From: Octopus bimaculoides
Taxonomy: Eukaryota
Direction of reading: 5' to 3'
Assembly: GCF_001194135.2 (NCBI RefSeq)
Contig: NC_068990.1
Coordinates: 88,774,286-88,838,285, forward strand
Length of the DNA stretch: 64,000 nt
Of this stretch, positions 1-41,748 are shown piece after piece. Under the pieces are notes generated by a model. It was given only the letters and a program-made list of their open reading frames with translations, made no database searches and was not told where the DNA came from. Both the position numbers and the translations under genes were made by a program. Position 1 is the first letter of the stretch, and every line of letters begins with the position of its first letter.

Positions 1-199
1 GATGTACCTGAGAAAAAATTGTGGAAAAAGAAAAACGTAACAGCAGAAGATTGTAAAGAAAAATGTTTGTCTGACAGAAATTGTTTATCATTTGAAATAA
101 CAAAAAAAAGTAAAAAATGTTACTTATCAAATCAACTTCCATATCCCTTCATGAAATTACTGCCAACCAAAGATAGAGATTACTACCAACGAATAAAAT
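1..199 (+). CDS. Exon A1 (partial), PAN/Apple type A
   Basis: Frame 1: DVPEKKLWKKKNVTAEDCKEKCLSDRNCLSFEITKKSKKCYLS...RDYYQRIK. PAN pattern CxxxC..C.SF..C; donor T|GTAATT at 199/200. Confidence 0.85.
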
Positions 200-3100
200 G
201 TAATTATTCTTTGTATTTTATCACTGGAATTTTCTTTTCCATTATTTCTGAAATTTATGATTCCATTTGTACTTCATCATCATCATCATTTAACATCCGC
301 TTTCCATGCTGGCATGGGTTGGATGGTTTGACAAGCTGGCTTTGCTGTATGTTTTGGTATACTGGATGTCCTTCCAAACAACAACCACCCCAGAGTGTGG
401 GGTTGGGGTATGCAGTGACTGGTAGAACTTGGGCCAGTAGAGGGGGTAGGGGACATCAGGATAGCAATGATACAGTGAGCAAGGCAATGAAGACAGGATT
501 GGAAAGCAAAAGATATGCATAAAGCATCAAAAAGATGAAATGTGAGGAAGAGGAGAGATGTTGTTTGGTTTGTTGGGGTAGGGTGTGGAAAAAGTTTTGT
601 TGCTTTTACATGTAGGTGGAATGCACAGTGCTCTCAGAACTCAGTTTCATTGAAGTAGGCAGGTCTTCTCAAGAACCTCATGTCACCAGACATCTCAGTC
701 CATTGTCATCTCCTCTATGATGCCTAACATCTTAAGATTAGTCCTCACTACTTCATCCCATGTCTTCTTGGGTCTCCATCTTCTACAGGTGCTATTCACT
801 CTCAGTGATCAGCACTTCTTTATACAGCTGTCTCCATTCATACACATATGTCCAAACAAATGTGCTCTTCTCTCTCTTTTGTAATAGCAGCTGCAAAATG
901 CCAACAAAAGTACTATGAGATAGACATCTCTAACAAAAAAGAGATGTTAGCCCAGGCCCACAAACTCATAAAAGAGAAAAAAACCTAGGCTAACCTTGCA
1001 CTCCCAGCCAAAGTGGAGGCAGAAATTGAGAAGAGGATCGTAAAGTATAGGTGCATCTCAGAGCAGTCTCAGAGAGCAGAACAACCCTCCCACTTTCAGG
1101 TGCCCGACGTTTTGGTACCATCTCAGTCCTTTTTAAAACAGAAGAGCTGGTCATGAAGCATTCGGTGGGACCCTGCAAAACTGACCAGCTTATAATCTAC
1201 CCATCCTACATGGGCAGAAGAACAATAAAAGTTCAAGTATCTGGAATAACACCAGGTATCAACATATGGTGGCTCATGGGATGTGTGATCGCAGAGGGTA
1301 GAAGGCCTCATTGCTTTACTTGTGATGAAGCAACACACCTACAAGCGCTCTGCCCTCAGCAAATAAGTACAAGGGTCCCGTTGCAGAAGTCAACCATAAA
1401 AACCAACACCTCACAACCAAGCTCAACAACCCCCCCTCTCACAAACAAGCACACAGAAAAAGATACATATACAAACACAAATTCACTTTCACACAGAGAG
1501 GAGGCTGTTGCTGCAGACACTAGTTCTACCACATTGAAGAATGATGATGAGGGGGAACAGAGTAAATAAAAATAAAACGAAAAGTCACAGAAGTGAGACA
1601 TCTTGTCCTGCACCAAAACAAGATGTCAAAGAAGCACTCATACCCACAACAATTGCAGATACTCAGACAACTCCTACATTATCACAATCATCAACTAAAG
1701 CACCAAAAACCCCACTGCAAACTAAAAAAAATCCCAAAAGGTAACTCACACCACAAATACAACAAGAACAGCAACAAACAATGACNNNNNNNNNNNNNNN
1801 NNNNNNNNNNNNNNNNNNNNNNNNNNNNNNNNNNNAGTTCATGATAAGCTCTACAGTCAGACGGGTTTGTATGAGATGTATGCAGAGCAACGAAACTATT
1901 CTGAAAACTCTCATACAGTGTCCATGCATTGCTGACTTGTGGAGCTTTGTTGAACAGTTATTGTCATGTGTAGGACAGATCTAGCTATCATCTGAGTCTA
2001 TCAGAAAGATCTCGCTGTCTCCTTTCTTTGGCCCGGAAGGACAAGCACTTTTTCTGTCTGGTGGCTATGGCAAAAGGGGTCGTGTGGTGGATACAATTGA
2101 AAGGTTTGAAGACAGATACCTTCCTCTCCAGCCAAGACCTCATTGACTTTTTCAGGTTCCATCTGAAAAGGATAGTGAGGCTGGAGAGGGAGGTACTGTC
2201 ACCCAGTAAGTTTGTTGAAAGGTGGGTGAATGTGGCCAGAATAGCCCATGTGAATGGGCCTATTTTAAGTGTGTGCCTGTAGGCCAGATAGAATGAGGAG
2301 GAGAGGGGTGCTTACCTTATGTTCCTTTGGTGTTAGGGAGTCCAAAGTGTGTGAGTTTCCTTTGGTTACCTCTCAGTGGAACTCCCCCTTGTTGCGGGAG
2401 TACAGTATTGGTTTAATCTCCTTGTTAATTGTTGTGGGGTTTTTTTTCTGTTTGCACATTTAACCCCACTGTCCCTCATCTGTGTATCATCCTTCATGCT
2501 TTGTGTCAGCCCTGGTGGCCAATAGAGAATCATCATCATCATCATCATCATCATTATTATTATTATTATTATTATTGATTTGACTCAGGTTTGGTCTTAT
2601 TCCTGGCATCATTTATGTGGGCAGCAGGTACTACTTGTAACCATAGGTACCCACTAGCTTTCAATAGTCTTTCAAGTCCAGGAACTTTTTTTGTATCACC
2701 TCATGTAACAAATAGGCCATTTCAGAATTATGCACCACATGCATTATAATGTTTAATGAGTGTGTGTGTTTGTGTATGTGTGTGTGTGTGCACGTATGCA
2801 TCTGTTTTGAGGGTGGGTATAAAATGTAATATTTATTTTCTTTTTTTTCTTCCAGTTAACGGTCACAAAATTAAGCTTTCTAAAGTTAGCATACCTGGGC
2901 AGGATGCTTTAAGACAGCTTAAGAATATGAGCTTAGATAAGTGTGATGAAGCTTGCTATCAACATCCAGAATGTAATTCTTATGAGTATAATGAGAAAGA
3001 AAAGCTCTGTAATTTGAATGATGCTACTCAGTCAACTGATAAACTTAAACCCAACAATGACAATTGGGATACTATCATCATTGATACAGGTCAGTAGAGT

Positions 3101-6100
3101 ATTTTATTTTATTTTTATGTGCATGTCTGTGCATGTCTTGTGGAAAGCATTGGCAATGATAAATCATATTACAGTACTTCAGACTCATGGAGTGCTGTGC
3201 ATAAAATATATTGTGCTTTTTGTGTGTGAGTGACAGCAGAGTACTTGAGAAGAACCATACATAATCGCAGCAAAAATGATGTTCTAAAATCATTTCATTT
3301 ATTCTTGTGCATGCTAGGCTCTGCCCCTAAGCTAATGCTGCTTCATCAAGCATTCCCCAAATCTCATTGCACTAACTTCACCTTAACACCTATCCCTTCA
3401 TCACTTCTCTATTTGTAGCACAAATTAACACCTGCAGTGACTTGAGAGCAGAGTTCGCATATATCATTTCCCCCATCCATTCTTTGTGCTACCAGGTTCC
3501 GCCTTCCCTTCCCCCATCCCCTACTGGTACCACATCCATCCTTCATTCTTGTTATCTTCCCTTTCCACACTATTTTCATTGGTCACTTCCTCTCAGTCAC
3601 TTCACTTCTCTCTCCCTCTTCTCTGCTATACTCCATCATAACACTTCACATATTTGCTATCCACCAACCATAAGTACCCCAATATCTCTTTCTCCAATAC
3701 TGGAACAAAGTATGGCTGAACTTGGGATCATGCGGAGAGAATACAAACTCTTAATTCATATGCTACAAATGATTGTAATATTTAGGACTATAAAAATCTG
3801 CAAGGCCTTCTTAAGATTTAAAGGATAATGTTTAATAGGAGATGCTTTCCTTCATAACCTTGCTACCATGTAGGTGGCTGGTCAAAATTTACCCTCAAAT
3901 TAAAAAGAGAAGGAGAAGAACATACATACATACTTTTTTATATGTATGTTTGTATGCAGATGTCTTCAGATTGTTTCACTCAATACTTCTGATTGTAAGA
4001 TTGTCATCTCTTTATTCTCACCCTCCTCCAAATATACTCTCACCCTTGGTACCAATTTCTGCTTTCAATTTCAGATTACACCAAAATTAACTGTGGGCCA
4101 CCAAAAGACATTGTTGGTGCTGAGAAGTCCTACAATACTACCACCTATAAATCTGAAGTGATCTACACTTGTCCAGAAGGAGACAAGCTAAAGTCAATAT
4201 GTAAAAAGGATAGGAAATGGTCTCCAGTAAATTCTACATGTAAAGGTAATGTAAATAGCTTCTGTTTTGTTGCCACTGTCAGGGTAATTTTATTTTATTT
4301 TCATGCTAAATGTCTTTGTCAGATGAAGTCTGGCTGATTCTGACAACTTACAGTGTTTGTAGCTGGTGGAAGAGACAAAGGAAGCTGTCCTCAGACCAGA
4401 TACCACCCCAAATGCTTGCAACAGAGTGGACATCATTGACTTTTTCCAAAGGCGAAGTATTAAAGTCTCCCAATGAAAAAAGGGAAATATGGTAGACTGT
4501 TCCCTCCAGAAGACATCCATACAGTTTCCATTTACCAGATTTCATCCTTAGTTGTGAAGCAAATTTTTAACCAATTTTTAACCACATAACCAAGATTCCA
4601 CCCAAGACCACAGTATTTTGAAGTAACCTCCTTAACCTCACAGTCATACCAAGGGTATCTGTGTAGATCTCTTAATTTCCAACTTGACCTTTTTCATATG
4701 ATGCCCCCCCACAAGTCCTTCCTCACTAAAATTCAGCAATCCTTTGAAATAGCCTTCCAGTGCTCTAACAATTCTTCTAATCCACCATCCACCACACTTA
4801 ATTATAATAAATGCAATTATTATTAATGATGGGTTTGATTTAATTTTTGATGGCAGGAGTTCAATCTTTACCCTCAACTTCAGTATTCGAATGGTACTGA
4901 ATTTTATCAATACCTGAATGGCTAACAGACAAAGTTGCATTTGAATTCAGAACATAAAGAACCTGAATACATAATGCAACAGGATTTTGCCAACGTTCTA
5001 ATCATTCTTTGAGTGAACAATTCTTAATTATAGAAATAATAACAATGATTATTAACATATAAGAGCACATGATATACACTTAAAAAAGGGATGATGATGA
5101 TGATGATGATGACAATGGCAACAATAATGATACCAATGTCTACAGGGAGATTTTTTTATATCACCAATATTGTTGAGCTTGCCATGCAGCTTGCAAGGCT
5201 ATAAACCCCAAGGGAGAGTTGGGACAGCTTTATGTTAAGGAATGAGGGATTAAAGTGAGGTAGAAGGGGATAGTGGGGCAAAGCAGATTCTTGTGGGAGA
5301 GAATGATTAACAGGAGCTGCAATTAGACAGATATTAGAGATGAAGTGTCCAGGTGACCCCTGAAAGTAAGTAAAAATGGGTGGTGGATTTGCATGATTGT
5401 ATGAGGTGGAGGAGATGAGGGGATGCGGAGGCAACATGCAACCGTAAAATATTAGGTAATATTGAAGAGCAAGCACTGATCGTTCATAAGTTGGGGAAGA
5501 GAAAGGGATGCAAAAGAGTGTGGGTGGTGTTGAGAGCAAAAGGATAGTAATAATATCAGTCTTCTCTTTTGCTCATTCCATATTATTCCTCTTTTACTTA
5601 ATTTTCTTCTCAACACATTTGCACTTTCTATACAGGCACACTGATACTGCACATTCATTAGAGCACACTAGCTTCATTCCTCTCTAGTCTTTGCATATGG
5701 CCTTCATCTTACTGTCATGTTGTATAGCTGGTCAAATACAAGCAACATACAATCTGCCTTTCACTTGTTGTGAGAGGCCTTTTGTTTCCACCAGAGGTTA
5801 TAGCTTACTGAACTTACTCCATCCTATTATTCTAGCAACAATACACTTTGAANNNNNNNNNNTTTGAGAAAATTCAGTTCCTGTGTGCCCAGTGCACTTC
5901 TGATGAGTCCATATGTTGCACTGGATACACCATATGGAATTCCTACCAACACCTTTCCTATATATTGAGCAGAGCACACACATAATATTCATGCAACATT
6001 GGTATCAATTTCTGTTCTTAATTTCAGTTTATGCAAAAATTAACTGTGGCACTCCAAAGGAAGTTACTGGTGCATCAAAGTCCTACAAAACCACCACCTA

Positions 6101-9100
6101 TAAATCTGAAGTGACCTATACTTGTCCAAAGGGAGAACAACTAAAGTCAGTTTGTGAAAAAAACAATGAATGGACTCCAGTGGCAGAAGCCTGTAAAGGT
6201 AATGTAAATAGCTCATCTCCTGATGTTTTTGTCTATGTAATTTTGTTTTATTTTTGTATTAAATGTGTTTGTCAGAGGAATACTAACTGAAAATATGACA
6301 AGTTTGTCAGTGTTTGTGGCTGTTGGTTGGGAAGAACTAGTTATCCTAAGACCAGAGATCTTACATATGCCCACAACAGAAAGTGGGCTGATCTATGGAA
6401 AGTAGTATGAACAGGAATGATAATGAGAGGGAGAGGTAACTGGTAGTGCCATAGGTGAGGATGGAGTATGTATTGATTCTGCTCACTGACTTCAGCAGCT
6501 AAGTTGTACCATGTACATATGGACTGTAAAGATGAGGATGGGATGCAATCCTTTTGAATGTAGAATAATCTCTGTCTAGAAACTGTTTAAGAAACCCAAC
6601 ATCAAAGATCACCCTGAACTTCAACGTCAAGTGTCCTCTCCAATTATTGCTCTCTGAGCTACAGGTCTATGCACTTTAATAGCCATCCACTCAAGCCATT
6701 TTTACCACTCTCATCTTGCTTTCAATAATTTCCTTCTTTTCCATCCTTCCCTTCTTTACAAGTGAAATTTAAAAATGCAGATGAGGGATTGACCAAGGAG
6801 GGAATCACCATTGTCTGACATTTCAAACTCATTCACTGCACAATCTCGTTTGCTATAGCTACCAGACAGAGGTAAACTACTTCCTCTGTCCAGATAAAGA
6901 AGGGTTTGAGGTAATCATTCCACACATAATAACAGGTGGTTTTTAACATAACTTCATGACCCAGATATGTTTGGATGTGGAATGAAAGCATGCAAAATGA
7001 TTTTGTTTTATTGCATGCATCTCAAAGAGCTCTGTCCTAGCACTTCATTGACTGTAGATTTTATTTTGAACCAGGAGAGCCCTTTGTTAGCACTGCCAAA
7101 ACAAGGACTTAAGGAAGTTTCCCTATGTTATTCCCTGAACAAAAAGTCCTTCAAAACAAACTTAGCAAATCATTGTCATTGATGACCAAAGGAACCATGA
7201 GAATGTCTGCTTTATCATGCCATTAATTCTCAATAGATTGTTAAAGTGGAACATCCACCAATCCTATTGCCTAGGTCATGTTTCATCCTGCATACTGTAT
7301 CTTCTGAAATCCTTTTGATTACATTAGATAATGTAAAATGCCTTTTTTAAAAGATGGCTGGGGATGATTGAAAGAAGTTTTGTTAATATTTCTAACATAT
7401 TGGGCATCCACATAGGGATTTCATTCAGCTAGTTGTGGTGATTGTGGTGGACAATACTTGGTCACTGTTTATATATTTATTACAATATCAAACATTCAGA
7501 TTGACTCACAGATGCTCAAGTTTGGCATAATGACATGAATCACACAAGTGTCGATAAGTGGGTGGCCCAGGCATTTCATGACATCATTGTTTCTGCGGTG
7601 ACTAGATTTTAAAAGCCATGACTGCCACCTCAATGTAATCAATTATTTATCCATTATTTAGGGACATGGCAAAACATAATTAATGAAAGCAATGAGATCG
7701 TGTGAGATTCATGTCTTTCTCAAGGACACTAACTGTCTATTTAAAATGAACTGATTTAGATAGAGAATCAAACCTTGATTATTGACTCACCCTGCTCAGT
7801 CCATATTTATAATAAAAGGAATACTAGGGAAAAATTCTCAGGGTCACTTCCTGCGTGGATAACAAATATAGTTAATTAAGGTTTCACCCTCAGTAGGGGG
7901 TAAAATTATTATGTTATGGTCTTATTCTGGTCATGAAATTCAAAAGTTACAACCTTGTAAAGATAAACACTCTTTTTCTTCATTTCATTAAAAGTATAAT
8001 TTTAGTGAATTAAAATTTCTTAGCTTGCTACATTAAGTTGTGAATGTCCACATTGCTACATATTTATATTTATTCACTAGATTATGATAGAAAAGAATTA
8101 TTTATTTTTGTTTTCCCAGGAAAAACATTGTAAAAGAGTCAAGTGATGGGTTATAGACCTTGCCATTACTAATTACATTTAGTTACATCCTTTTACATTC
8201 TGGGTTCAAATCCCACCTGGATGTACTTCACCTTTCATACTTCTGAGGTTGATTAAACAAGTGCTGAAGTCAATGAACCTTTGTGTATTCTCACTGCAGA
8301 ATCCGTGGCATTGTGTTTATTATTAAAATTAGTAACCTCAGCAATGATTATAATTATTCTTGTATTTTAGGGTGATAGATTGACAGAATCATTAGAGCAT
8401 CAGACAAATTGTGATATTCGTTCTGGCTCTTTTAATGTCTAACTTCTAATCCTGCTGATGTTAACTCTACCCTTCTAGGGCCACTAAAATACAATACCAG
8501 TCAAGTTTATAGGCCAATTTGATTGTTTAACTCCTACCTCATATTTTTGTTGTTTTCTCTATATTAGAAATTATTACTATTGTTGTTATTTTCACTCAGC
8601 TAAATTTTCCTTTAATTCCAGTTGCTGAAATCCATTTTGTGAAAGTAAAAGATGCAGCTCTGGATGTATCTGAGAAAATATTGTGGAAGAAGAATGTAAC
8701 AGCAGATGCTTGTGCAAAAAAGTGTTTCGCTGACAAAAATTGTTTATCATTTGAAATAAACAAAGAAAATGGAAATTGTTACTTTTCAGAAAAAAATGCA
8801 GCTTCCTCCAAGAAAATGAAAACAGCCAAAAGCAGAGATTACTACCAACGAGTAAAAGGTAATTATTCTGTGCATTTTATTATTGCAATTCTCTTTTCCT
8901 CTTACTTCTGAAATTTGTGATTCCATTTGTAATTCATAATGTACAGACAACCATTTCTGTAAAGACATTGACATGTCTCTGTCTTTACAGAAAGACAGAG
9001 ACATATTCCTGAAAAACAAAGAGCAATATTAGGAAATGGAAATACTGTTAGGACATTCTCATAGAGAATGTGTTCCTCTTGAACGCTTTTATGTATACCT

Positions 9101-12100
9101 TCAATTATAGTTTCATGTAAGAAAAGAACCTCATGGTGTTTTTCTTAAACCCAAAGAGTAATAGTATTAGTATTACTAGTAGTAGCCATGGTGGTGGTGG
9201 TAGCAGCAGGAGCAGTAGCAGTAACAGCAGCGACAACAGCTTTTTCTTCATTTCTTCTTGTTGACATGGCTTAAACAGTGCTATTACAACACAGTGTCTC
9301 ATCAGTAGTTGTCCTTCGTAATCTGCCATACAAAATAACAGAAAAAGTACTATCAATCTATGTAGTCATGTATTTGCTACATTTTGTCATGGTTATTAGA
9401 GCAAGATGACCTTCTTGTATTCAATCACGTCTGTTTGTTTGTCCTTGGACAAGATATCTCAAGAACCACTGGATGGATTTTGATGAAACTTTCAGAGATG
9501 TTTGGCCTTGTGACTGGCACAAACTGATTAAATTCTGGAATCGATCCGGTACTGGACAAGGATTCTCAATTATTTTTGCTGGGTTTTTTTTTTTACTTCC
9601 TTGTTGAGAGCAGTCAGGTTTGTTTTTAGTATTCTCGTTTGTGAGAGCAGTCAAATTTATTTCAGATATTCTCATTTCAAAAATCATCTCTGGCTAATCG
9701 TTGAGAGGACATTGGTGTTGCCTTGGTGCAGGTTTGCGCTCTCTGAGTGCTCTTGTTATTATTATTATTTTTATTATTTCTCTTTATCACAGATTTTGTT
9801 AGAGCTCTAAGAGTCTTACATGTACTGAGTTCTAATTCTGCCAAAGTCGACTTCTCCTTTCATCAGTTTTAGGGATCAATGAAATAAGTACCAGTTGAGT
9901 ACCAGGACTGATGAAATCGACTTGCCCCCTCTCCCCAAAATTGCTGGCCTTGTACCGAAATTTGAAATCATCATGACTACTACTACTACNNNNNNNNNNC
10001 CTAAATTTGAAATCATCATGACTACTACTACTCCTACTACTACTACTACTAAAGATGTTCTATAGCTCACATGGATTCTGATTAGGGTGACATTTTGGGT
10101 ATCAATTATTTCTTTATTACAAATAATCCTTTTACAATATTTTGCACAGATACTTTACAATATCTAATATATGAATGTGGTGTCTGCGTGTGTGCGTGTG
10201 TGCGCACGTGCGTGTGTATGTGTGCGTGTGTGTGTGTGAGTAGTAGTTGGAGGAGTATAAAATGTATTCCTTGTTCTCTCTTTTTCCAGCTAACAAACCT
10301 GTTATGTTTAAAAAAGTTAGCGTGCCAAGCAAAGCTACTTTAGAACAGCTTAAGAATAAGACCTTAAAGGAGTGTGAAAATTCTTGTCAACAATATGTAG
10401 GATGTAATTCATACCAGTACAATGCTGAAGCTAAGTTGTGTGATCTGAGTAATGTGACTCAGTTGAATGATGAACTTAAACCCAATGATGGAAATTGGGA
10501 TATATATTTGATTAACCCAGGTTAGTAGAATGTTTCCATTTTATTTATTTTGTGCCTGTGTATTTACATATATGTGTGTAGTGTGTATGTGTATATATAT
10601 ATATTTATATATATATATACGTGTATATATATCATCATCATCATTATCATCATTTAACATCCGCTTTCCATACTAGCATGGATTGGATGATTTGACTGGG
10701 GAATGGCAATCCAGATGGCTACACCAGACTCCAATCTGATCTGACAGTTTCTACAGCTGGATGCCCTTCCTAACGCCAACCACTCCGAGAGTGTAGTGGG
10801 TGCTTTTTACGTGCCACTGGCACGGAAGTGAGACCACTGCTCTGGCAGTGATCCCACTCGGACGGTACTGTTAGCGCTCCACTGGCACAGGTGGCAGTCA
10901 TCGATCCTCATCAGTCATGAACCTCATCAGGTGTTCAGATGTCTTGAGTTTGTTTTAGTCAATATTTTTTTTTCTAAATTCGTCCTGATCTCCTTGTTCT
11001 CAACCACTCCTGGTATACATGCACCACTGATATCAATTCCTCTTATCTTTCAGTTTACAAAAAAGTTAACTGTGGACCGCCAAAAGACGTTATTGGTGCC
11101 AAGAAGTCCTACAAAACTACCACCTTCAAATCTGAAGTGACCTATACTTGTCCAGAAGGAGAAAAATTAAAATCAGTATGTAAAGAGGATCATAAATGGT
11201 CTCCTGTAGTGTCTGCTTGTAAAGGTAAATTAATGTAAACAGGTTCTCTCTTGATGTCTCTGTTTCAGTAAATTTGTTTAATTTTTTTTCTTAAATATCT
11301 TTGTTAGAGGAAGAAAGATTGATACTTTGTCAATCTTCATGGTGTTGTTGGCTGGTGTGAGGGATTGAATAAGCTATCCTCAGACCAGGGACATCCCCAA
11401 ATGCATGTAACAGAACAGATTTCATTAAACTCATCCAAGTTACAGGTTATGCTATTAAATTTGATAATGGATTAAATCTGCTGACCAAAAGTAGTAAGTG
11501 TAGCAGCATGTCCTCCCCAGCAGGTTTCCACATAGTTTCCATGCATCAAATTTCATTCACAGGGCTTAGTTGTGAAGCAGATACAGCCATAAATTCTCAC
11601 AATACCATATTGTTAACTTACAGTTCAGCTCATCTCTGTCATTTTCCACTTCATTTCTAACTTTTCTTTTTTTTCACCCATTCTTCATGTCATCACCTGA
11701 AACTCTGTACAATACATAGCCTTGAGTACTTCTTTACTAGAATTCAGCAACTGACTGAAAGATTTCTGATGCTTTACTGATCTTCCAGTTCACTATTCTA
11801 AATTATGATAATCCACCACCCAACCTTTTTTGTCACAGCAACAAAACAGAAAAACTGCTTTCTCTGCTTGATTAAAAATGCCTGGACATTCAACATGCGC
11901 ATGTAAAATTAGTTTGTTGTAATGTATATATTTCAGACAGGACTGTCTGATAGCACCTCAGTGACTGTAGATTATATCTTGGACTAGTAGAGCCCTTTGG
12001 TAGAATCTGTTCGTAGTATTCTCTGAGTAAAAGGTTATCTTTCAAATGAATTTTTCACCTCATTCAAATCAAAGCCCAGAGTGTCTCTGAGAATGTCAGT

Positions 12101-24100: not shown

Positions 24101-27100
24101 AAAATCCATGCAGTTAAAATTTTTAATAAAATATAAGAAAATCACTTGGTGCATTGTTTTATAAATGTACAATATATTATGAAAAAAAAAAACTGTCCAT
24201 CTAGAAAATTATTTTTCAGCATAAGACACCCACCCTTCTCAGAATTAATGTGGATTCTAGTACATCAAAATGTTGCTTGAGTGTTTTGGTAGTAGATAAT
24301 CCATTTGTACATCCTTCTGATAGTGTGCTTTTTTTTTAGATTGAATGACCATAATAACACTTTACATTTTATGGGTATACTGATCCTAAAAAAGAAGACC
24401 ATTAGAGAAGAGATATACAAATGTTTTGTCTGCAACTTAAGTACTGAGATAATTTTTTGAATGTCTGAAGATGTTCTACAACTCACATAAATTCTGATTA
24501 CAGCATCATTTTGTGAATTAGTGGTTTATAATAAATTTTCCATTTACAAAATTATGAATCATATGCTTTACAATATTTAATAAATGTGTGTGTGTGTGTG
24601 TACTTGTGTGAGTGTTTGGATTGGGATGGATGTTAATAAAATGTAATTCTTGCTTATTGTTTTTATTCAGCCACTGGGGAGCCAGTTACAGTTAAAAAAG
24701 TTAACCTACAGAAGGCGGATACTTTGGGACGGGTTAAGAATAAAACCTTAAAGGAGTGCAACAAAACTTGCCAGGAATATCCAGGATGTAATTCTTTTCA
24801 GTACAATGAAGAAGCAAAGTTATGTGATCTGAGCAATGTAACTCAGTTGACTGATAAACTTCAGCCCAACGATGGAAGTTGGGATATATTCGTGCTTAAC
24901 CCAAGTCAGTAGTGTTTCTATTTTACTTATTATGTTATTTCTCTATGCATTTACATTTACATATATGTTTGTATAGTATACATATATACATGTGTGTGTG
25001 TGTAATAAAAATTCTTTTAAATGAGTACAGTGAACTTGTTTTTAAGAGTAGAAGATATGTTTTGGACAGAGTCCTTCTTCAGAGGAAAAGTTGAAAGGAG
25101 AGAAATTAATGAGAGGCAGCAGAGTCTTACACTCTCTAACTTAAAATAAAAATCGACTGTGACTGATACGGAACACAGGACCATGTGAGCTTTATATGTA
25201 AAGAAGAAGTGGTAGAAGAAAAGGTGTGAGGAAGAAGAAGGAAAATGTAATAGAATGAGGTAAAGCAAAGTCAAGAATGAGATGAAGGTAAAAGAAGAGT
25301 TGATGGGTAAGAAAGAGCTTAAGGAATTGAGTGGAGGTGTAGGAGTAGGCGGGAAAACATTCATTAAATCTGTCAGTGACATGGTGCTGAGTTCAAATAT
25401 ATAACATTATTCTTTGTTTCCTTGAGAACATGGATCCACGATGCCTTACACTAATAAGTGAGTGATGGAATGACTGGTAATGTTGAAGTAGGGTGACAAC
25501 AATCTTGTAAACCAAATCTCAAATCTGATTAGCCTATTATTACGTAACATGCTTCACAATTTTAGTATACATACCTTATTAGTATTTCCTCCTAAGTTCT
25601 ATATACTCTGGGAATGTATTAAAGCTCTTTTCAGGGTTACCTTATTTGAATTCTTACTATCGGGTAATTAACTTCATGTTAATTAACTTCATAACTTATT
25701 GAGAATTCCTAAAAACAAGATCCTGTGTAAGACAGTTCGGTATTCTCAATGAATGCACAAAAACCATTTTAAGGGCTACATACTTTGTATTGTTGTTACT
25801 GGATTAGCAAAACAATTACGAGAACAGAACCAACAGATAAGCCCCACTTTCCCAGCTAGTATATATATACATATATATATATATGTATGTATGTATGTAT
25901 GTATTTATATCTATTCTCAATTTCCTTCAGTGTATTTCATTAAATGTATTTTGTTCTAAATTTGTAATTATCTCCTTGTTCTCACCCTCCTCTTAATATA
26001 TGCTCATCATTGATATCAGTTTCTATTATCATTTCTAGCTTTTACGCAAGTTAACTGTGGATCACCAAAAAGTGTTATCAATGCTAAGAAGTTCTATAAA
26101 ACCATCACCTATAAATCTGAAGTAACCTATATTTGTCCAGGGGGAGAAAAATTCAAAGCAACATGTAAAGACAATAATAAATGGGATCCAATAATACCCT
26201 CTTGTAAAGGTAACATAAATAGGTTCTCTCTTTTTGCTAATGTCTAGATAATTTTGTTTTATATTTGTGTTAAATGTCTTAGTCAGTGGAAAACCAGCTG
26301 ACAATTTCCACTGAATGTGTGGTTTGTGGAGGAGAGAAGATGATATCGTCTGTCTAGAAACCACTTCAGATGCTTGCAATACAGTGGGCTACATTAAAAC
26401 TATCTGGGGGCTAAGTAAGGTATTAATTTAGCAAATGACTTATGTATGCCACACAAAGAAACAGGAAGTGTGGACAAATTCTTTCAAGAAGGCTTCCACA
26501 TAGTTCCTATTTTATTGACAAGGCTTTGTTGTGAAGTTTTAACTATGCAACCAAAATCCCACCCAATACCACATTGTTTAGTGAACTTATTACATCCACA
26601 ACTATACCTTGGCTCATCTAGGTCATTTTTCTCTTTTAATTTCTAATGTGACTTTTCTCACCCATAATTTGTCATCATCCAAAACTCCATACAATATAAT
26701 ACCTTGAGTCCTTCTTTACTAAAACTTGACGATCCTCTGAAATAGGCTTCTGGTTCTCTCGTTATCCTCCAACCCACCAATCTTAATTACCATAATGCTA
26801 ATAATAGTAATGCTTCCTGTTTTGTGCTCAAAGCCAAAATTTTTATGAGAGTTGTTTAATAGATACCATGAATCCTACTATTTGACTGGTAGTTTACAAT
26901 ATTATCCCCAACAAGTATGAAAGCAAAGTTGACCTTGGCTTAATCTAAACTGATAACCAATAGAGCCTGAATACATTCTGTAATGCATTCAATTCTCTAA
27001 TTAGCACACGTGTATACATTGAAAATAAAGATGAGGATGCCGAAGGATTTCTGTTTCAGGCCAACTGAAGAAACCCTCCATCGAAGATCCCCATGAACTC

Positions 27101-30100
27101 CTTGGATGAGTGTTCTCGCCACTTCTTGTGCCCTGACCTACAGGTTTATGCACTGTGTTCCCCATCCACTCTTGCCACATTCACCTCACTTTCAATCATT
27201 TCCCTTCAGGTCAATCTTCCTTTCCATTCTTACCTTCTTTATATGTGAAGTTTTAAAATTCAGATGGGGGAGTGACCAAAAGGGAATCTTATATGTACTC
27301 CCACCACAGAATATGCTCAAGTTAGAAGATATTATAAATATTGTTGCTATCAACAATAATTATAATTATTCTTCGGGTTAAAGATGAAATCTTTTAAGCA
27401 TCAGACAGAATGTTTTTCTATTTCTTGAACTTCTTAGTTCAAATCCTTCACTGAGTCAATAAAATGAAATGCCAGTTAAGTGTGGGGGGGCCAAATTAAG
27501 TGACCAATTCTGACCTCAAAGATTTCACCTATATTCTATGTTAAAAATTATTATTGTTGTTCTCAATGGCCTAAATTTTACTTTTATTCTAGCTTCTCAG
27601 ATTCATTTTGTGAAAATACAAGATGCAATTCTGGATGTACCTGGGAAAACATTGGCAGACAAGAAAAATGTAACAGCAAATGACTGCGCAAAACAGTGTT
27701 TGTCTGACAAAACTTGTTTATCATTCGAAATAAATAAGCAAAGTGGAAAATGCTACTTTTCAAAAGAAAATACAGCTACCTCTAAGAAAATCAAAACAAC
27801 GAAAAGCAGAGATTACTACCAACGAATAAAATGTAATTATTCTTTGCATTTTATCACTAGAATACACTTTTCCATAATTTCTGAAATTCGTGATTCCATC
27901 TGTACTTTAAAATATATAGACAACCATTTTTATAAAGACATTGACTGGTTTACCTATAAGGACAGGCATAAGCACATTCCTGATATAAACAATATTAGTA
28001 ACTGTGAATACTATTAAGACATTCTCATACAGCATTTGTTTACTTTGAACATTTTATGCATGTTTTCATTTTTTTTATCTAAGGAAGGAAACTTGTTTTC
28101 TTAAACCTGAATAGCAGCAGCAGCAGCAGTGGAAGTAGTAGCAGTAACAGCAGCAGCACCAGATATGATTTCAAATTTTGGCACAATACAAGCAGTTTGG
28201 AGGTGACAAACCATCAATCCAAGTTCTTGACTGTTCTTGTATCTACACCAGGAGAATGAAAAGCAAAGTCAACCCTGGCAGAGTTTGAAGTTAGAATGTA
28301 ATGAGATGGAATACTGCTAGGTGGCATGGCTTAAGCACAGAATCTCCCCTTTTGTTGCTGTCCTTCATAATCTGATATAGAAAATAACAGAAAGTAGCTC
28401 TCTCTCAAACCTCTGCTGTTATTTTTGATGCAGGTTTAATGCTGAGAAAAGTATGGGAACCTCAAGGACATTTGAGATGATGTTCACAATATGGCATGAT
28501 ATCACTGCCAGCTGATAATCAAGACAGACTGAGTGAGTGACGTGAACATGATCTTTACATGTCTTGCACCAAGCAACCGAGGATTTTAGGTTCAATTCTA
28601 TATTTTGCTAAAGGTTTATACTAAATATGCTTTACTAAGAATGAGGGAAGAAGCTGAGATGTCTTGGAGATGTCAAAGTAATCCATGTCTTCTTTTTGTA
28701 TGGAGTTCCCCCTTTAATATTCAGAGTGGAATATCCTGCTTTGGAGGATTTCTTTTTATTTATTCTGAGCTGTCATTTTGTGGATCAATTATTTGTAATA
28801 AATTGTTCATTTAAAACAAATTATGCACCAGATGCTATATAATATTTAATATGTATGTGTGAAAGTATAAGATAAATTTCTTGTTTTCTTTTTCTATTTT
28901 CTCTAGCTGATGATGAGCTTCTTATATTTAAAAGAACTTCCATACCAGGGCAGGATACTTTTGGCCGGCTGAAAAATATAGAGTTAAAGGAATGTCATCG
29001 TGTTTGTCATCAAAATCCAGGATGTAAATCTTATGAGTACAATGACAGAACAAAATCCTGTGATCAAAGTAATGCGACTCACTTGACTCAAAACCTTCAG
29101 CCTAACAAAGAGGGTTGGGATACTTACATCATTAACCCAGGTCAGTCGAGTATTTTCGTTTTAATTGTTGCATGTGTCAATGTGTGTTTGTATGTATTTG
29201 CATGTATGTACAATACATACTAAATGTCATGGATATGAAACACTCGCATTCAGAATTGTAAGTTTCTGAATGGTGATTCAATGCTCACTGCACTTCCTCA
29301 GCTTTTGCAAGTTTAATGCATGTTTAATGTGTGTTTAATACAGGAGCAAACACCATCAGTAGATCCAAGTTATCACCATATTTTTTCATCATTCAACTTT
29401 TCTAGAATGGATTATAAGATTTAGGCAAAAACAAACAAAAAAAAAAAAACTTTTTATGCATTTGTGTATGGTTAAGACTGAAATAAAATAAAATGAAATA
29501 TATTAAATAAAGTAAGATAAAATGAAAGGATTTGAAATAGTAAGTAAAATAAAATTTAAAATAAAAAAAAATAAATTGCTTGCAACTATGGAAAAATGGA
29601 CATACAATGGGTTAAATGTGTGTGTGTATATATATATATAAACAATATATGAGTATATGCATATATATGTACATGTATGTATATATGTTCATCTACATGT
29701 ACATATAGATACATAACTGGATACATGACGTGGCAAAAGAACAAGGACAAAATGGTAAACAAGGTGCAACAAACAAGCAGGCCACATAGAAACATCCCTT
29801 TCATCAGCTGCCACCATTAAAACTCCGATGTTTCGAAGAATTAAGGCAGTACGCATCGTTAAAATGGTTCTTCCCACAAACACAAATTAAATTGTTTTCG
29901 TGGAGGGTAGTGGCGGACGGAAAACAAGACAGGAAAACGAAACGGTGAAATAAACAAACAAAAAGGCTGTACAGCCAGACGTGAAGTGTGTATGNNNNNN
30001 NNNNGGAGGGGCAAAGAAGTACGTGCGAGCTTGGTGATTCCAAGAACGGAAAGAAATAGCAGCCGGACACACGTGACCAAGGCTGTGTGAAGAGAAAGAG

Positions 30101-30869
30101 TAGCAGAGGGAAAAGGAGGGGAGGAAGTAGAATAAAAGTGAGCAACGAGAGGTAGAGAGAGAGAGAGAGAGACAGTAGTAGTAATGGTCAGAGGCGAAGG
30201 ACGAGTAACAAGAGATAGAGAGAGAGAGACAAGTAGTGACAGGTAGAGGGAAGAATGAGACGGGGAGATAGAAATAGAGAGAGTCGCGTTAGAAAAATAG
30301 TTAACTGTGGTGGTGGGGGGTGCAAATTTCAAGTTTGTTTCACTTGATATCTTTTGTTCTAAGGCAGCGAGCTGGTAGAAACGTTAGCATGCCGGGCAAA
30401 ATGCTTGGCGGTATTTTGTCTGTCTTTATGTTCTGAGTTCAAATTCCACTGAGATTGACTTCGCCTTTCATCCTTTCGGGGTTGATAAATTAAGTACCAG
30501 TTGCATACTGGTGTTGATCTAATCAACTGGCCCCCCTCCCTAAAAATTCCAGGCCTTGTGGCTAGAGTAGAAAAGAAAAGAATATCTTTTGTTCTTAATT
30601 TGTCATTATCTTGTCGTTTTCAATCTCCTCCTAATATACATGCACTATTACTGTCAATTTCTTTTAACAGCTTCACCTACTGCAGAAGTTAACTGTGGAC
30701 CTCCAAAAGACATTGATGATGCAACAAAGTCCTACAAAACCACCACCTACAAATCAGAGGTGACCTATACTTGTCCATTAGGAGAAAAGCTAGTATCAAT
30801 ATGTGAAAACAGCAGTAAATGGAGTTCAGTAGAGACTCCTTGTGAAGGTAACATATATAGGTTCTCTCT

Positions 30870-30910
<41 letters not shown>

Positions 30911-33067
30911 AATTATTGTATACAGTGCTCAGGTGCACTTCAACTTGTCAAAAGTGCGTATAAAGCATATGCAGTAATGTACAAATGTCTGGAAAGTGAA
31001 CAGTGTATGAGTCAGATCCATGCTTGCATGTGTATGGAGGGGAGAAAATCAGGTGTAGTGTTGGCGAATCTCAGGAAGCATGGAAGTTTTGAAGGATGCA
31101 GTCCTCCGACAACTAACAACTGATGCTGGTAGTTTGTTCCATACTTCAGCAACTCTTAGCGTGAAAAAAATGTATCCGAAAGTCATGGGAGCTGTGCTGT
31201 TTTCTGACTTTGTAAAGATGTCCACAGATGTTAGACAGGTGGTGTTTGAAAAGGTGCTCAGAGTTAGAAACTATTATTATAAATATTGGTAAATTAGAAA
31301 ATTACTATTTAAATCTCACAATGAGAGATATTCAGCAACAGTACTTTGGAGTAAAGATTTTTACTAACATAATATGGCAGTCCTGGTTTAGGATGAATGT
31401 TGCTGTAATTTAGCCCCAGGAGACAGTCTCCAGCTGGCTATATGACATGATCTGTGTTCTTATTTCCCTTGTTCGAAAATATAAGGACACAGATTGTGTC
31501 ATATAGCTAGCTGGAGACAATGTCTCCTGGGGTAAATTACAGCAACATCCATCCTAAACCAGGACTGCCATGTTATGTTGGCAAAAATCTTTACTCCAAA
31601 TATTATTAACATCAACAATAATAATTATTGTTGTTGTTATTAAGAGTGATGGATTCTCAGAATCATTGGAGTATCAGACAAAATGTCTCATAGTATCTGT
31701 TATGGCTCTTTACATCTGAGTTCAAATCCAGCTGAGATAAACTTTGATTCCATTTTTCCAGGACTAATAAAATGTAGCACCAGTTAAGTACAGGGGCCAA
31801 CTTAATCAACCAATTCCAACTTCAAATTTCTGGCTTTCTGTCTATTTTATGAATTATCCTTGTTGTTGTTGTTGTTGTTACTTCTCATTGGTCTAAATTC
31901 TACTTTAACTCTAGATATTCAGAATCATTTTGCGACAGTAAAAGAGGCAATTCTGGATGTAAAAGGGAAAATATTGTGGAATAAGAAAAATGTAACAAAA
32001 GAAGCTTGCTTAGAAAAATGTTGGTCTGACAAAAATTGTTTATCATTTGAAATAAATAAAGAAAATGGGGATTGTTACTTATCAAAGAAAACTGCAGCTA
32101 CCTCCATGAAATTAAAGGCAGCCGAAGACAGAGATTACTACCAACGAGTAAAATGTAATTATTTTTTGTATTTTGTGTGTGTCTGTGTGTGTGTGTGTGT
32201 GTGTGTGCACGCGTGCATACATGTATTTTCACAAAAATTATTCAATTAAGCAAAATTGAAATGACAGAAGTTGTGCATGATAAACATTTCCCAACTAAAC
32301 ACAGATACTACAGGTTATTCAACAGAGACGACACAACATCAGCTACAGTTGCACAAAAAACATAAAACTTACCATGTAATCATTAAACAATAACACACCT
32401 AGACACACACAACACTGAACAAAGATGCAACTGCACAAAAAGTAGGACATGCTCATTGCACAGAAATTGGTTACAAATTAACATAGTCTATGAAGCAAAA
32501 GTTTCATAGAAAGGACAAAGAAAAAGGAACTATATCAGCGCTCCTAGCAGAACCATTAAAGACAGATACATACAACATACACAGACAAATTGGACCACAT
32601 ACAAAAAGATTGAAACATCCCTGTCCAAACAGTTCTGGGAATTTAAAAGAAAACAACATCACCACAAACATAAAATGGGAAGTTATAGACCATGAACCAT
32701 CATATCTAAATGGCTCTAGTATCTGCTCTTTCTTCGCTGTAGAAAAATACCACACAATCATGCAAGACATACACAATCCTAAAGAAGAAAAATTATATCA
32801 TCTCACAATGCAGGCACCAAAGAAAATTCATTTTCAAAAAACTGTCCAAACACTAAATATCTATACATATGCCCACAGGCATAAACATTAAACAGATATG
32901 AATATGGACACACATCCGTACACATACAAAATAAGACCCACATGCACATGACATGCAAAAGAACACACCTACTACCATAAATTCAAAACTACACACTATG
33001 TAAAACATTTGTCTATAAGTGTGCATCTGTGTGTGTGCATATGTGTCTGTATATATTTATGTATACT

Positions 33068-33122
<55 letters not shown>

Positions 33123-33753
33123 NNNNNNNNNNNNNNNNNNNNNNNNNNNNNNNNNNNNNNNNNNNNNNNNNNNNNNNNNNNNNNNNNNNNNNNNNNNNNN
33201 NNNNNNNNNNNNNNNNNNNNNNNNNNNNNNNNNNNNNNNNNNNNNNNNNNNNNNNNNNNNNNNNNNNNNNNNNNNNNNNNNNNNNNNNNNNNNNNNNNNN
33301 NNNNNNNNNNNNNNNNNNNNNNNNNNNNNNNNNNNNNNNNNNNNNNNNNNNNNNNNNNNNNNNNNNNNNNNNNNNNNNNNNNNNNNNTACAAAAAAAGGT
33401 GGATTTTTTTGTATGATTGTGTATAGAGGAATATATTATTTTGCTTAAAAGAGTTCCAACACTGTCTGTTTTTTATGTTTTATTTATATTCCTGCAGAAC
33501 TAATGTGGGGTATAGAATATGGAATATACAATATATAATATAATATACAATATATAATATAAAATAAAATAAAAATGGATGGCACCATGAAATAAAGTAT
33601 TGAATGTAGATGAAATATTGAGTGTTCAATATAAAGGATCAAATATATAAATATATAAATATAAATATATATATATAAAGGCGACTCGAGTTTCAGGGCT
33701 ATTTCCCTTCGTCATGGCCGGTATGACAGTCTTTAACAGACTGTGGTTCACTC

Positions 33754-33786
<33 letters not shown>

Positions 33787-33787
33787 G

Positions 33788-33830
<43 letters not shown>

Positions 33831-36800
33831 TGAAGTTGCCTAGTAATCTGCAAGATTTAAAATTGTTCATTTAAAACAAACTATGCAGCAGATGCCTTCT
33901 AATATTTGACACATATGTGCATGTATAAAACGTGATTTTTGTTTGTTTTTTTCTAGTTCATGAAGACTTTATTGTATTTAAAAAAGCTCGCATACCAAAA
34001 CGTGATCAATTCCAACGGCTTGAAGATGTAACTGTAAAAGAGTGTAAAAAATCTTGCAAGAAACATGCAGATTGTACTTCCTTTCAGTACAAAAAGAATT
34101 CTAAAGTCTGTAGTTTGAGTAATGTGACTCACTTGACTCTTCAGATTAAACCTGACAATAAAGATTCGGATATTTACATTACTAGCGCAGGTCAGTAGCA
34201 TACTTTTATTTTATGTTTTGTGTGTGTGTATATGCAATATATATATATAAGTTAATAAATCATATGGTATACACCTGGTAGTTTACCAGTAAAGCACATT
34301 CCCTTTCTGTATTCCTTGGGTATTTGATTAACGAGAGACAGAAGATGTAAGATACAAGAATGTAGTAATCAATAAACATCCTCATATCTTACATCTTCCA
34401 TCTCACTCATTAATCATATATATATATATATATATATATCATCATCATCATTTAATGTCTGCTTTCCATGCTAGCATAGGTTGGACGATTTGACTGAGGA
34501 CTGGTGAACCAGATGGCTACACCAAGCTCCAATCTGATCTGGCAGTTTCTACAGCTGGATACCTTTCCTAACGCCAACCACTCCGAGAGTGTAGTGGGTG
34601 CTTTTTATGTACCACCGGCATATACATATATGCACACATATTGAAATGCCTTAACATTGTTAAGGCATATTTCAGTAATTCTGGTTCACTCTATGTTGTG
34701 CACAACACACACACACACACACATTATAGTCCTCCAAGCTATAAAATATGCATTTAAGGCTAGATACCCATGTGAACTACTGTATAACAATAACCTCATT
34801 TTAAAAGCTGAATCTTTTGTAGAATTAGAAAAGAAATTTTAGGTGTGGAAGCAAAACCTAGAATCAAAGGACTCAAAGTTAACTTAGCAAACACTGAAGT
34901 TTTAGTAAGAAAACAGATAGCACTCTACTCCCATCAGGAAAATTGCTTTGGTATGTAGAAAAGCAGTAGCTAGATATTCCATACAGTGTACCTTGTACAA
35001 ACTATGAATGTGTAAGAGGTACAATGAAATTACAGACAGGTTAACAGAGAAAGTAGACTTTGTATGTAAAATACCCAATTTTTCTCTCAAATCAGTTACA
35101 CTCTGTCATATATGAACTCTGACATTAACCATCCATTGGAGCATACTGGCTTCTTTTCTTTCAAGCCTTTGCATATCCTCAGTAGTCACAGCCCATGTGT
35201 CACTGCCATGTAGCATAGTTGTTCATACGCAAAAGCAAAAGGGAATAAAATGGCATATGTGTGTTTTAAATCTCTACTTAAAATTTTATATTATTATTAT
35301 TTTACAGAACCTACTTCATGCAAAGAAATGAAAAAGTGTGGCAAAAATGTAACTGATGGAGAATACTGGATCTACCCCTCTGTTCTTAATCATAAAAGAT
35401 TAAAGGTTTACTGTTACAATATGAAAACAGATACTCCAAAAGAATATATCACCTTACCACATGAAAATTTTGCATCTTTATCAACATTGAAACCACTCAA
35501 GATATGTGCGAAACTCTTTAACAATAGAATAGACAGACCAGGGAAAATTGTATTTCGGAAAGTTCGAATTTTCCCACAGGTAAATGTTTCATTGTTTGTT
35601 TTATTTTCATGATGTTTCTTATAAATATGAGAAATTAGGGATTTGTTTATCAAGAAATTTTATCCTTTAGCACAATTTTAGCCAAGAAATCTAATTTGGC
35701 AAACTTCAGAAGGAAATAAAAATATTCACTAGAGTTAGTACAATAGTAACGTTGCACTAGCTAAATCTGGATATACAGAGAAAATTGAAAGTATTCCATT
35801 TAGGTGCTTCTCTAAGTAAAGCTGAACAGATATGTAACCCAACATATGGACTTGTGAATGCTGTCAGACATGCTAATGATAAAAAGATGGATAAATGTAG
35901 CAATGTTAATGATAGTAATAACATAGGAATCCGCAGAAGACTAGAAGGAAGAATCGTTTTATTGAAAATAACCACACAAAAAAAATGAACAAAAAATTTA
36001 TTGTCATACAATTAACAGTTTCTCTAATGCACGATATGAGACACATGCAAAGTAAGCAAACAACATAAACATCAGGAAGTTTATAGAAATATACAAGTGG
36101 AACTACACAATAAGAATGTAAATTGATTAATTATGCATACATTCAAATGTTTATACAGTTTAATGTCCACAGGATTACACATACACTCTAATGTTTACCC
36201 AAATACATAGATTTTACACCATACACACATACATGAAAGCATGAAAGAATTTGGCTGCAGCTGTGGAAATTTCAAAGTTTACTGAATTTTTTTTTAATTT
36301 GGTGTATTAATGTAGCTTTCCAAGCTGAATCTCAGGAGATATTTCACTTTTTTCAGAAAAATTTTTTAAAACAGTTATTGAGGTTTAAAGTTTGATAATT
36401 TTCACCCAATCAGAAAGCAGGATTTGGCAGCTGTCATTTTGTGCGTGATGTTTTAATATGAATCAACTTCTCCTATACACACAACATATAACCCTTCATA
36501 ACTTTTTAATTTTTTGGAATTTTAGAAAAGTTTTGAGAATTTGCATTCTACACTCAGGAATTCATACAATTATGCAAAAACCAAACAGAAAATTGAGGGT
36601 TGTGTGATTTAAGGCCTATTTAGCATCAATGAACATAAATTAATATTTATTAATTAAAAATTAACAAACATCCTTTACAGCTGTTACAATTCCAGACCTT
36701 CAGAAAATTAACTACTTAAAAGCCAAATCACTTCACAGGTAGATACAGATATACAAAATAGGTGTTCAATTCCTGCATGTTGAGCAAATGGCTGCAATCC

Positions 36801-40588: not shown

Positions 40589-41748
40589 GGACTGTGTGAT
40601 GCAAGGTGATGAGAATGGTTCTTTAGTGCATCACACAGTCCTTACAATAAATATAAAAAGAATAATACATATATGTGTCAGCCAGAAAAGAGAGACACTA
40701 CTGAGTAGAATGTTTAATAGAAGATTTATTGATATGTTAACATGTGTGTCTGTATGTGCATCATGTAAACAGAATAATAGACAGGCAGTATTATGACTTA
40801 GACTGCACTGAAGCTGAAGAGATCCCATTAGTCTGAAATAGTACTTTTTTCAACTGCTAGACTCACATGTTCCACCAAAGAGTCATAACCTCAAAACTGC
40901 CTTTGATAGGGCTGGAAATATATTTCATTGTTTGTTTTCCACTCTGAGACTTTGCTTCTTCCATTTTTACATTCCTTTATGAAGAAGGTAGAGATACTGT
41001 GACATTAAGAGGAGAGATAACTAAGCTTATAATCGTTGGTCTGAATGTTACTATTGTTGCAGTCATTATATTATGTACTTGGGCAATACTCATAATTCTT
41101 CTTACTTCAATTTGTCTAATTTACTATTGCGTAAGATTGATGAATTTTGATCCTGGTAGATTTCTACGTTACAATATATTTGTGTTAAGATAGATAAGAT
41201 ATTCCATAATCATGTTCTATTTTTAAATAAATAAAGGTAACAGAGGGCAGAATTGATAGAATGATGGATAAAATGCCTTATGGTTACATCACATTTTGTT
41301 CAAATCCCTTGAAAGTCAACTTTACCTTTTGCCCTTCCTGGGTCAGTAAGAAATGTACTAGTCAAATACCAAAGTTGATTAAACTTAACATAGCACTCCC
41401 TCAAAATTTGCAGTATGAAATCATTATAAAATAATTTAAACTGTTTTCTGTTGTAAATCTTTCCAGAGCCTTCAAGTAATGGTGTGAAAAGCTGCGCAAG
41501 CCTGAGACGAATACAATGCTCCCAGTCTGAAGATGAATGTTGAAACGAAACAAATTTTAAAACATAATGTCTTGTGAAATATGAAATAAACAGTGATGTT
41601 GCATGATATGAAAAATGCAATCGGACAATATTTTTTGAAATGTACAATGTAAAAATTTAATAAAAGTTTTGAGAATTAAAAGATGTAGAGTTATTGTTTA
41701 TGAAATTGTAAAATATTGAAGTCTTGTAAAATCTGAAATGTCACATCG

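Follow-up and report, generated by a model that had tools for sequence, protein, structure and literature searches.

Do exons that can be skipped without loss of the reading frame point to combinatorial splicing, or do they record the way in which a gene has grown? This question is raised by a 64-kb stretch of Octopus bimaculoides DNA (hereafter the window; approximately CM046610.1 88.774-88.838 Mb, + strand; G+C content 36%). It carries 22 repeat exons for PAN and Sushi domains, followed by four GON-domain exons ending in a stop codon, all on the + strand. The original prediction described the repeat exons as symmetric phase-1 cassettes with a capacity for combinatorial isoform diversity. Below, A and B stand for the two PAN exon types and S for the Sushi exon type, and coordinates are positions in the window unless another sequence is named. 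We found that the 22 exons are probably the 3'-terminal part of one giant PAN-PAN-Sushi-GON gene that grew by duplication of A-B-S exons. They are the tail of a far larger array, a wider extent that the original prediction had missed. A uniform 1-1 phase is what such duplication normally leaves behind and carries no weight as evidence for alternative splicing.

The exons were located by tblastn with one A, one B and one S peptide as queries, and the splice sites were then read directly from the flanking sequences. In positions 1-34190, the search recovered exactly the 22 + strand exons that had been predicted (7 A, 7 B and 8 S), in the order ABSS-ABS-ABS-ABSS-ABS-ABS-AB. In all 20 complete exons, the acceptor is AG preceded by a pyrimidine tract, and the donor is GT. 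The earlier statements on length and phase were also confirmed for all 20: two nucleotides (nt) precede the first full codon and one follows the last (phase 1-1), and the lengths are divisible by three, with 237 or 240 nt for A, 231 or 234 nt for B and 171 nt for S (177 nt in S8). The spliced frame is open across all exons joined in order.

The first unit consists of A1 (1-199), B1 (2856-3089, 234 nt), S1 (4075-4245, 171 nt) and S2 (6028-6198, 171 nt). Exon A1 is incomplete; its 5' end is cut by the window start, it ends in phase 1 with T as the last nucleotide, and the full exon is present in the gene model P0017. Two three-exon units follow, the first made of A2 (8622-8858, 237 nt, last nucleotide G), B2 (10290-10520, 231 nt) and S3 (11054-11224, 171 nt), the second of A3 (14042-14281, 240 nt, last nucleotide T), B3 (16785-17018, 234 nt) and S4 (18509-18679, 171 nt). 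The next unit again has four exons: A4 (20031-20238), B4 (20554-20787, 234 nt), S5 (21330-21500, 171 nt) and S6 (22325-22495, 171 nt). The second incomplete exon is A4, of which 208 nt are visible; it ends in phase 1 with C, and a gap of 794 N (19237-20030) removes its acceptor and the 5' ~29 nt. Then come A5 (23060-23299, 240 nt, last nucleotide T), B5 (24671-24904, 234 nt, last nucleotide A) and S7 (26039-26209, 171 nt), as well as A6 (27593-27832, 240 nt, last nucleotide T), B6 (28907-29140, 234 nt) and S8 (30671-30847, 177 nt). The array is closed by A7 (31915-32154, 240 nt, last nucleotide T) and B7 (33957-34190, 234 nt), the last repeat exon before the GON exons. All exons of this series except A1 and A4 are complete and in phase 1-1.

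The GON exons, with coordinates fixed by exact reconstruction of the NCBI protein, are exon 1 (35308-35579, 272 nt, phase 1 to 0, starting with AA), exon 2 (37390-37566, 177 nt, phase 0-0), exon 3 (40264-40405, 142 nt, phase 0 to 1) and exon 4 (41467-41543), which contains the stop codon TGA.

Pfam searches with single exon peptides bore out the view that each exon encodes one domain. Every A and B peptide tested passed the PAN_1 gathering score; the best alignments covered positions 3-74 of the 76 profile positions within exon peptides of 77-79 amino acids, and some covered less. The Sushi profile was matched by all S peptides, with the first of them (56 amino acids) covering positions 1-56 of 56. 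In a search against the PDB, the S-exon profile matched DAF, CR2 and other complement control protein (CCP) structures. The GON domain of the window protein was matched in Pfam with E = 3.5e-13, and B7 together with the GON part showed 46% identity to GON-Abd-1. Only PAN, Sushi and GON were found by Pfam on the window gene, and no immunoglobulin superfamily (IgSF) or fibrinogen domain.

How freely could such exons be skipped? We tested all 243 possible ordered exon joins, and 238 of them produced no stop at the junction. The five exceptions were A1, A3, A5, A6 and A7 joined to GON exon 1, where TAA is created because the A exon ends in T and GON exon 1 begins with AA. Frame-neutral skipping, with the very type of exception that had been predicted, therefore holds. 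This result favors the reading of the exons as a cassette library, in which regulated combinatorial skipping would produce many secreted PAN/Sushi-GON isoforms that differ in their binding surfaces, in the manner of Dscam or FREP diversification. We return to this explanation below, after the gene itself has been delimited.

Two features of the acceptor regions may be mentioned here. A second in-frame AG, 15 nt downstream of the S8 acceptor, offers an alternative start at 30686; the upstream acceptor, with the exon starting at 30671 ('ASPTAEVNCG'), is used in the models of both species discussed below (P0001; P0008). An S8 exon started at 30686 begins with AA, and joined to a T-ending A exon it would also give TAA. 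The pyrimidine tracts before A6 (27538-27592) and A7 (31860-31914) are open in the exon frame and have a hydrophobic reading, with an ATG at 27538. The openness is probably an effect of their T/C-rich composition; the tracts could also supply a signal-like N-terminus for a transcript starting in the intron.

To which gene do these exons belong? The spliced window protein is 100% identical to the O. bimaculoides protein XP_014770611.2 (P0001; LOC106869402, 1,067 amino acids). This model begins with an internal Met directly downstream of the 794-N gap and from there runs serially through A4 to B7 and the GON exons. Our searches found no current NCBI protein model of O. bimaculoides that covers the ten intact exons A1-S4, and B2-S4 fall within none of the genes called on the present assembly of this species. 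The v1 O. bimaculoides model P0017 (1,730 amino acids) contains A1-S4 in series with 100% identity and extends further upstream.

A much longer model was found in O. vulgaris. The orthologue CAI9728796.1 (an EVM model, P0008) has 4,283 amino acids, and its gene covers 252 kb. It belongs to the 90%-identity cluster of LOC106869402. Profiles of the three exon types resolve this protein into a row of 61 modules that leads up to GON (...ABSS ABS ABS ABSS ABS ABS AB-GON). We observed that the number and the order of exons are conserved 1:1 between the two species. The identity per exon was 71-93% with almost no indels, and the mean identity was 81% for A, 83% for B, 90% for S and 86% for GON. The O. 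vulgaris protein is named 'ADAMTS20-like' because of its GON domain, a transfer at the level of this domain only; models of the gene contain no metalloprotease, disintegrin or thrombospondin domain, judging by the families listed for XP_014770611.2, by the first eight entries listed for CAI9728796.1 and by the tiling of the latter with A, B and S profiles.

Every covered exon is included in series in four out of four models, i.e., in XP_014770611.2, in its earlier version, in P0017 and in P0008. These represent two species and three pipelines, and they are models, not reads.

The regular pattern could in principle have been produced by scaffolding, with repeat units mis-joined or duplicated across gaps. 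The assembly is based on short reads, and the window contains ten runs of N. Besides the gap at A4, the gaps at 1786, 5853, 9990, 13029, 29995 and 33123 are intronic. At three gaps of 10 N (9990-9999, 13029-13038 and 41978-41987), a sequence of 30-50 nt is repeated across the gap (30 nt at 9990 and 50 nt at 13029). At 9990 and 41978 the repeat touches the gap on both sides, like unmerged overlapping contig ends; at 13029, 86 nt of the right flank separate the right-hand copy from the gap. These overlapping or repeated flanks of the three gaps speak against mis-joined units. An independent test comes from the O. vulgaris orthologue, in the assembly of another species with exactly the same exon order and number. 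There, consecutive exon segments (all 22, in the same order) are separated by exactly one junction residue, with the exception of S4 to A4. The spacing of S4 to A4 is 11 residues, which equals the junction codon plus the 10 residues of A4 hidden in the gap. Therefore, the gaps hide no further domain and do not interrupt the frame. Furthermore, the copies differ by 15-40% at the nucleotide level, hence they are not collapsed or duplicated reads. We consider an assembly artefact extremely unlikely.

How far does the array extend beyond the window? Upstream sequence was sampled in three stretches of ~45 kb each, located between 88.25 and 88.46 Mb (L002, L003 and L004). In these stretches, 64 out of 66 exon matches were intact and in phase 1-1, a count in which some exons appear twice, as L002 and L003 overlap by ~12 kb. 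The array is present also between the NCBI models LOC128248837, LOC128248838 and LOC128248840 and two larger models (1,865 and 4,083 amino acids). If continuous up to the window, the array could span ~560 kb and have a few hundred exons. A full HMMER search found giant arrays in Octopus species only, and shorter combinations of PAN, Sushi and/or GON in a cuttlefish, in Argonauta, in gastropods and in amphioxus.

The fragmentation of the annotation suggests another explanation, namely that the region is not one working gene; it would hold several shorter genes or a partly decaying field of repeats, with some exons being untranslated pseudo-exons. NCBI indeed splits the region into many 'genes', and the absence of A1-S4 from current NCBI proteins and of B2-S4 from called genes would fit. 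Also, two upstream exons look defective (a truncated S at L003:34667 and a B at L004:32087). Still, the NCBI breaks that were examined correspond to an assembly gap (P0001), to the truncated S exon at L003:34667 or to intron read-through, and the exons run on through the 'intergenic' spaces. In the gap-poor O. vulgaris assembly, a single 4,283-amino acid model takes in all 22 exons and the GON domain.

The open frames are a further argument against decay. All 22 window exons are open and have canonical splice sites, far beyond the neutral expectation. In a neutral model with 10-20% substitutions per site, the range implied by the divergence of introns, one exon stays open with p = 0.09-0.25, while all 20 complete exons stay open with p = 1e-12 to 1e-21. 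Changes of exon length are restricted to multiples of three. The preservation of open frames beyond neutrality indicates that each exon is translated often enough for selection to act. Taking both sides together, we judge a set of separate or decaying genes to be very unlikely, and we continue with the reading of the exons as the end of one giant gene.

How did such a gene arise? The closest relatives among the B exons are B1 and B4, B2 and B5, and B3 and B6, with B7 standing alone. The longest self-alignments of the window (400-900 nt, introns included) were found between A2 and A5, B2 and B5, S3 and S7, B1 and B4, and B3 and B6, at offsets of 12-18 kb. From the pairing of the B exons and from these self-alignments it follows that two copies of one 10-exon block (ABSS-ABS-ABS) make up 20 of the repeat exons.

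A short paralogue shows the same unit once. The gene LOC106874924 (P0012, 465 amino acids) is made of eight exons that encode a signal peptide, A, B, S and GON, with A, B and S exons of 240, 234 and 171 nt, the same sizes as in the window. It is located at CM046610.1 88,124,138-88,134,746 (L005 10001-20609), on the strand of the window gene and ~650 kb upstream of it. The GON domains of the two genes share 61% identity, and one 90%-identity cluster contains both LOC106874924 and the Abdopus aculeatus protein GON-Abd-1 (UniProt R4G2C1). LOC106874924 likely represents the archetype of the giant gene.

The following course of events probably accounts for these data. The ancestral type would have been an eight-exon gene with a signal peptide, A, B, S and four GON exons. 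Its A-B-S exons would have been duplicated in tandem, lately as a ~15-kb block of ten exons (ABSS-ABS-ABS). All copies would then descend from the same three exons, and their uniform phase would be both inherited and an effect of survivorship, rather than a splicing device. By default, all exons would be included in series, giving a giant binding protein of many modules, destined for secretion, with repeats that evolve fast outside a core of disulphide and aromatic residues. The anatomy and phases of the exons, their domains, the colinear orthologue, the super-repeat, the selection on open frames and the family relationship rest on data; secretion, a binding function, the tissue of expression and constitutive splicing are what we infer.

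Under descent, the phase pattern requires no further cause. Symmetric phase 1-1 exons are the rule for PAN and Sushi modules (Patthy's class 1-1 modules). Each copy has 171-240 nt and phase 1-1 because of common descent and because only symmetric exons duplicate without breaking the frame. The uniform phase does not reflect 20 independent events, since the exons are paralogues of three ancestral exons. Symmetric phase is a precondition for tandem exon duplication, hence it is no predictor of alternative splicing. The link that was drawn earlier between symmetric class-1 exons and exon shuffling was correct, and duplication is in fact the main explanation of the pattern.

We next consider the divergence between the copies, on which the case for a diversified binding repertoire had been built. 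Conservation of alignment columns by residue type was used as a proxy for surface position, with 23 A, 24 B and 33 S exons pooled from the window and the upstream loci. Nearly invariant columns were those of Cys, Trp, Tyr, Phe, Gly and Pro plus a few motif residues, while the most variable columns had mainly polar and charged residues. The earlier claim that the paralogous domains have diverged at surface residues is thus supported as far as this proxy goes, with variation mostly at polar, non-core columns. The ratio of nonsynonymous to synonymous divergence (dN/dS) in pairwise comparisons of window paralogues was 0.73 for A, 0.65 for B and 0.46 for S, with synonymous divergence (dS) of ~0.3-0.6. 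Such fast divergence of the repeats at non-core positions is a point in favor of a cassette library.

Conservation of intron flanks was considered as a possible signature of alternative exons. The flanking introns align over 100 nt or more at 62-76% identity (0.75-0.85 in the first 25 nt after the donor), and homology reaches 400-900 nt around the exons. Beyond the first ~25 nt, identity is about that expected from synonymous divergence, i.e., the flanks are no better conserved than synonymous sites, and this candidate signature was rejected.

Other evidence on splicing also failed to single out a regulated choice of exons. Annotated isoforms are absent for the gene in O. bimaculoides as well as for its O. 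vulgaris and O. sinensis relatives, even with Iso-Seq, RNA-seq and PASA among the inputs of the O. vulgaris annotation (PMC10700109). Protein searches, cluster listings and the full HMMER search found no alternative isoform and no transcript-derived fragment of the gene. A scan of positions 1-35300 for inverted repeats returned microsatellites and one local transposon-like pair, with no complementarity of the docking or selector type.

The comparison with Dscam and FREPs leads in the same direction. Tandem paralogous exons or domains and fast-diverging binding surfaces are shared with these systems. In Dscam, however, one exon is chosen per homologous cluster by docking/selector pairing, while here the copies are serial, and A, B and S alternate instead of being grouped by type. 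The FREPs combine IgSF and fibrinogen domains and are diversified in the DNA itself; neither of the two domain types was found here. With four serial models, no isoform labels and none of the features that define Dscam or FREP diversification, the label of 'cassette' exons and the proposed Dscam/FREP-like diversification found no support.

An inverted-repeat pair within the scanned region deserves a short description. It is located at 31345-31600 in the S8-A7 intron, with arms of 72 nt that are 93% complementary and 112 nt apart, and it has the look of a miniature inverted-repeat transposable element. Perfect intronic hairpins were also observed ~115 nt downstream of A2 (8973-9004, 14-bp stem) and A5 (23399-23445, 23-bp stem). 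Exons A2 and A5 are counterparts in the super-repeat; the two stems differ in sequence, and each is perfectly self-complementary. As a general mechanism of A exons the hairpins were rejected, since in the other A-exon introns that were folded (23 in all) the sequence is unpaired and ancestral. The hairpins at A2 and A5 may have arisen by template-switch palindromisation.

Several observations weigh against our reading of a single gene with serial exons. A signal peptide was missing from the start of every model of the giant gene. The gene begins upstream of the window, and neither its 5' end nor its promoter was found. Constitutive inclusion would be a default reading only, inferred from gene models. 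The A exons have weak donors (AAT|GTAATT), and nearly all of them contain an in-frame candidate for an internal donor, T|GTTTG, at the second Cys codon (e.g., window 8622-8858 and L002 14983-15222). In the O. bimaculoides Gnomon model P0002 and at three A exons of the O. vulgaris model P0008, A exons are ended at this internal T|GT, though the full exon is open; this is either a real use of an alternative 5' splice site or an artefact of the predictors. Finally, for a distantly related gene of another mollusc, which encodes a Sushi array plus GON, RefSeq lists an isoform from which exactly one Sushi module of 58 amino acids is missing (XP_046362262.2, XP_046362260.2 and XP_046362263.2; P0033/P0163/P0164). 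In the wider family, these isoforms set a precedent for a symmetric Sushi exon being used as a cassette. The weak donors, the internal donor used by models in two species and the mollusc isoform also count in favor of a cassette library.

Weighed against these points are the serial order of exons in all models, the missing isoforms and pairing elements, the unremarkable intron flanks and the fact that descent fully explains the uniform phase. Open exons in a 1:1 conserved order fit constitutive use, though they are compatible with skipping. We therefore regard a regulated cassette library as quite unlikely. Occasional skipping of some exons is more likely than extensive combinatorial regulation, but would be unremarkable. 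A related scenario, in which the whole array at 88.25-88.82 Mb is a single transcription unit of perhaps a few hundred symmetric exons, with skipping and internal donors giving a large secreted PAN/Sushi-GON repertoire that varies between individuals (e.g., in the salivary or venom gland), appears quite improbable.

The giant gene, read as a serially spliced product of exon duplication, can be compared with several known systems. Class 1-1 modules can be duplicated, inserted or deleted without a frameshift. With exons of such modules the window exons share one disulphide-bonded module per exon, phase-1 introns on both sides and lengths divisible by three. There is no difference in kind, while the scale is unusual (at least 60 modules in O. 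vulgaris, and the array present in every stretch sampled at 88.25-88.82 Mb). In complement receptor 1 and other CCP arrays, as well as in titin and nebulin, blocks of several module exons have been duplicated in tandem. The higher-order block duplication is alike; here, two PAN types are interleaved with Sushi, and there is no sequence relationship between those proteins and the window gene beyond the Sushi fold. A C-terminal GON domain (PF08685) is common to the window gene and to ADAMTS9, ADAMTS20 and C. elegans GON-1. On the other hand, the reprolysin, disintegrin-like and thrombospondin type 1 parts of the latter proteins are absent from the models of the window gene.

The closest known proteins are the octopod proteins with a signal peptide, PAN, PAN, Sushi and GON, i.e., GON-Abd-1 and GON-Abd-2 (UniProt R4G2C1 and R4G7D0) and LOC106874924. 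They have the same module types in the same order and with the same exon structure, and LOC106874924 is on the same chromosome and strand as the window gene. The short GON genes have one A-B-S unit and a signal peptide, whereas the window gene has at least seven units here and dozens in total, with the last unit being A-B without S. A search of the literature, limited to one collection of papers, returned nothing on octopus GON proteins or on this locus. The octopod GON family reportedly came, in work of 2013, from coleoid posterior salivary (venom) gland transcriptomes, and GON-Abd-1 of Abdopus is presumably a cDNA from that gland.

Downstream of the GON exons, the next gene in the window starts at 47464 (+). 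Its first exon is signal-peptide-like (MAVKLYFSIVRLVFLCTTLFICALA...), and the precomputed annotation describes a CACHD1-like protein of 1,431 amino acids with the Pfam domains dCache_1 and CACHD1_C.

That symmetric phase-1 exons can be skipped in frame is textbook behavior of PAN and Sushi modules and is nothing new. Newly recognised is a giant repeat gene that is so far known at this size from Octopus species only, and the array in O. bimaculoides may be several times larger than the O. vulgaris model. The current O. bimaculoides annotation fragments this gene and partly misses it. The locus offers a clean case of gene growth through duplication of exons in super-repeats, and its product is a candidate secreted protein of octopus saliva or mucus, very large and with a putative adhesive or binding role. 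If extensive exon choice were true, it would represent a new splicing-based diversity system in a mollusc, and the finding would have far greater importance.

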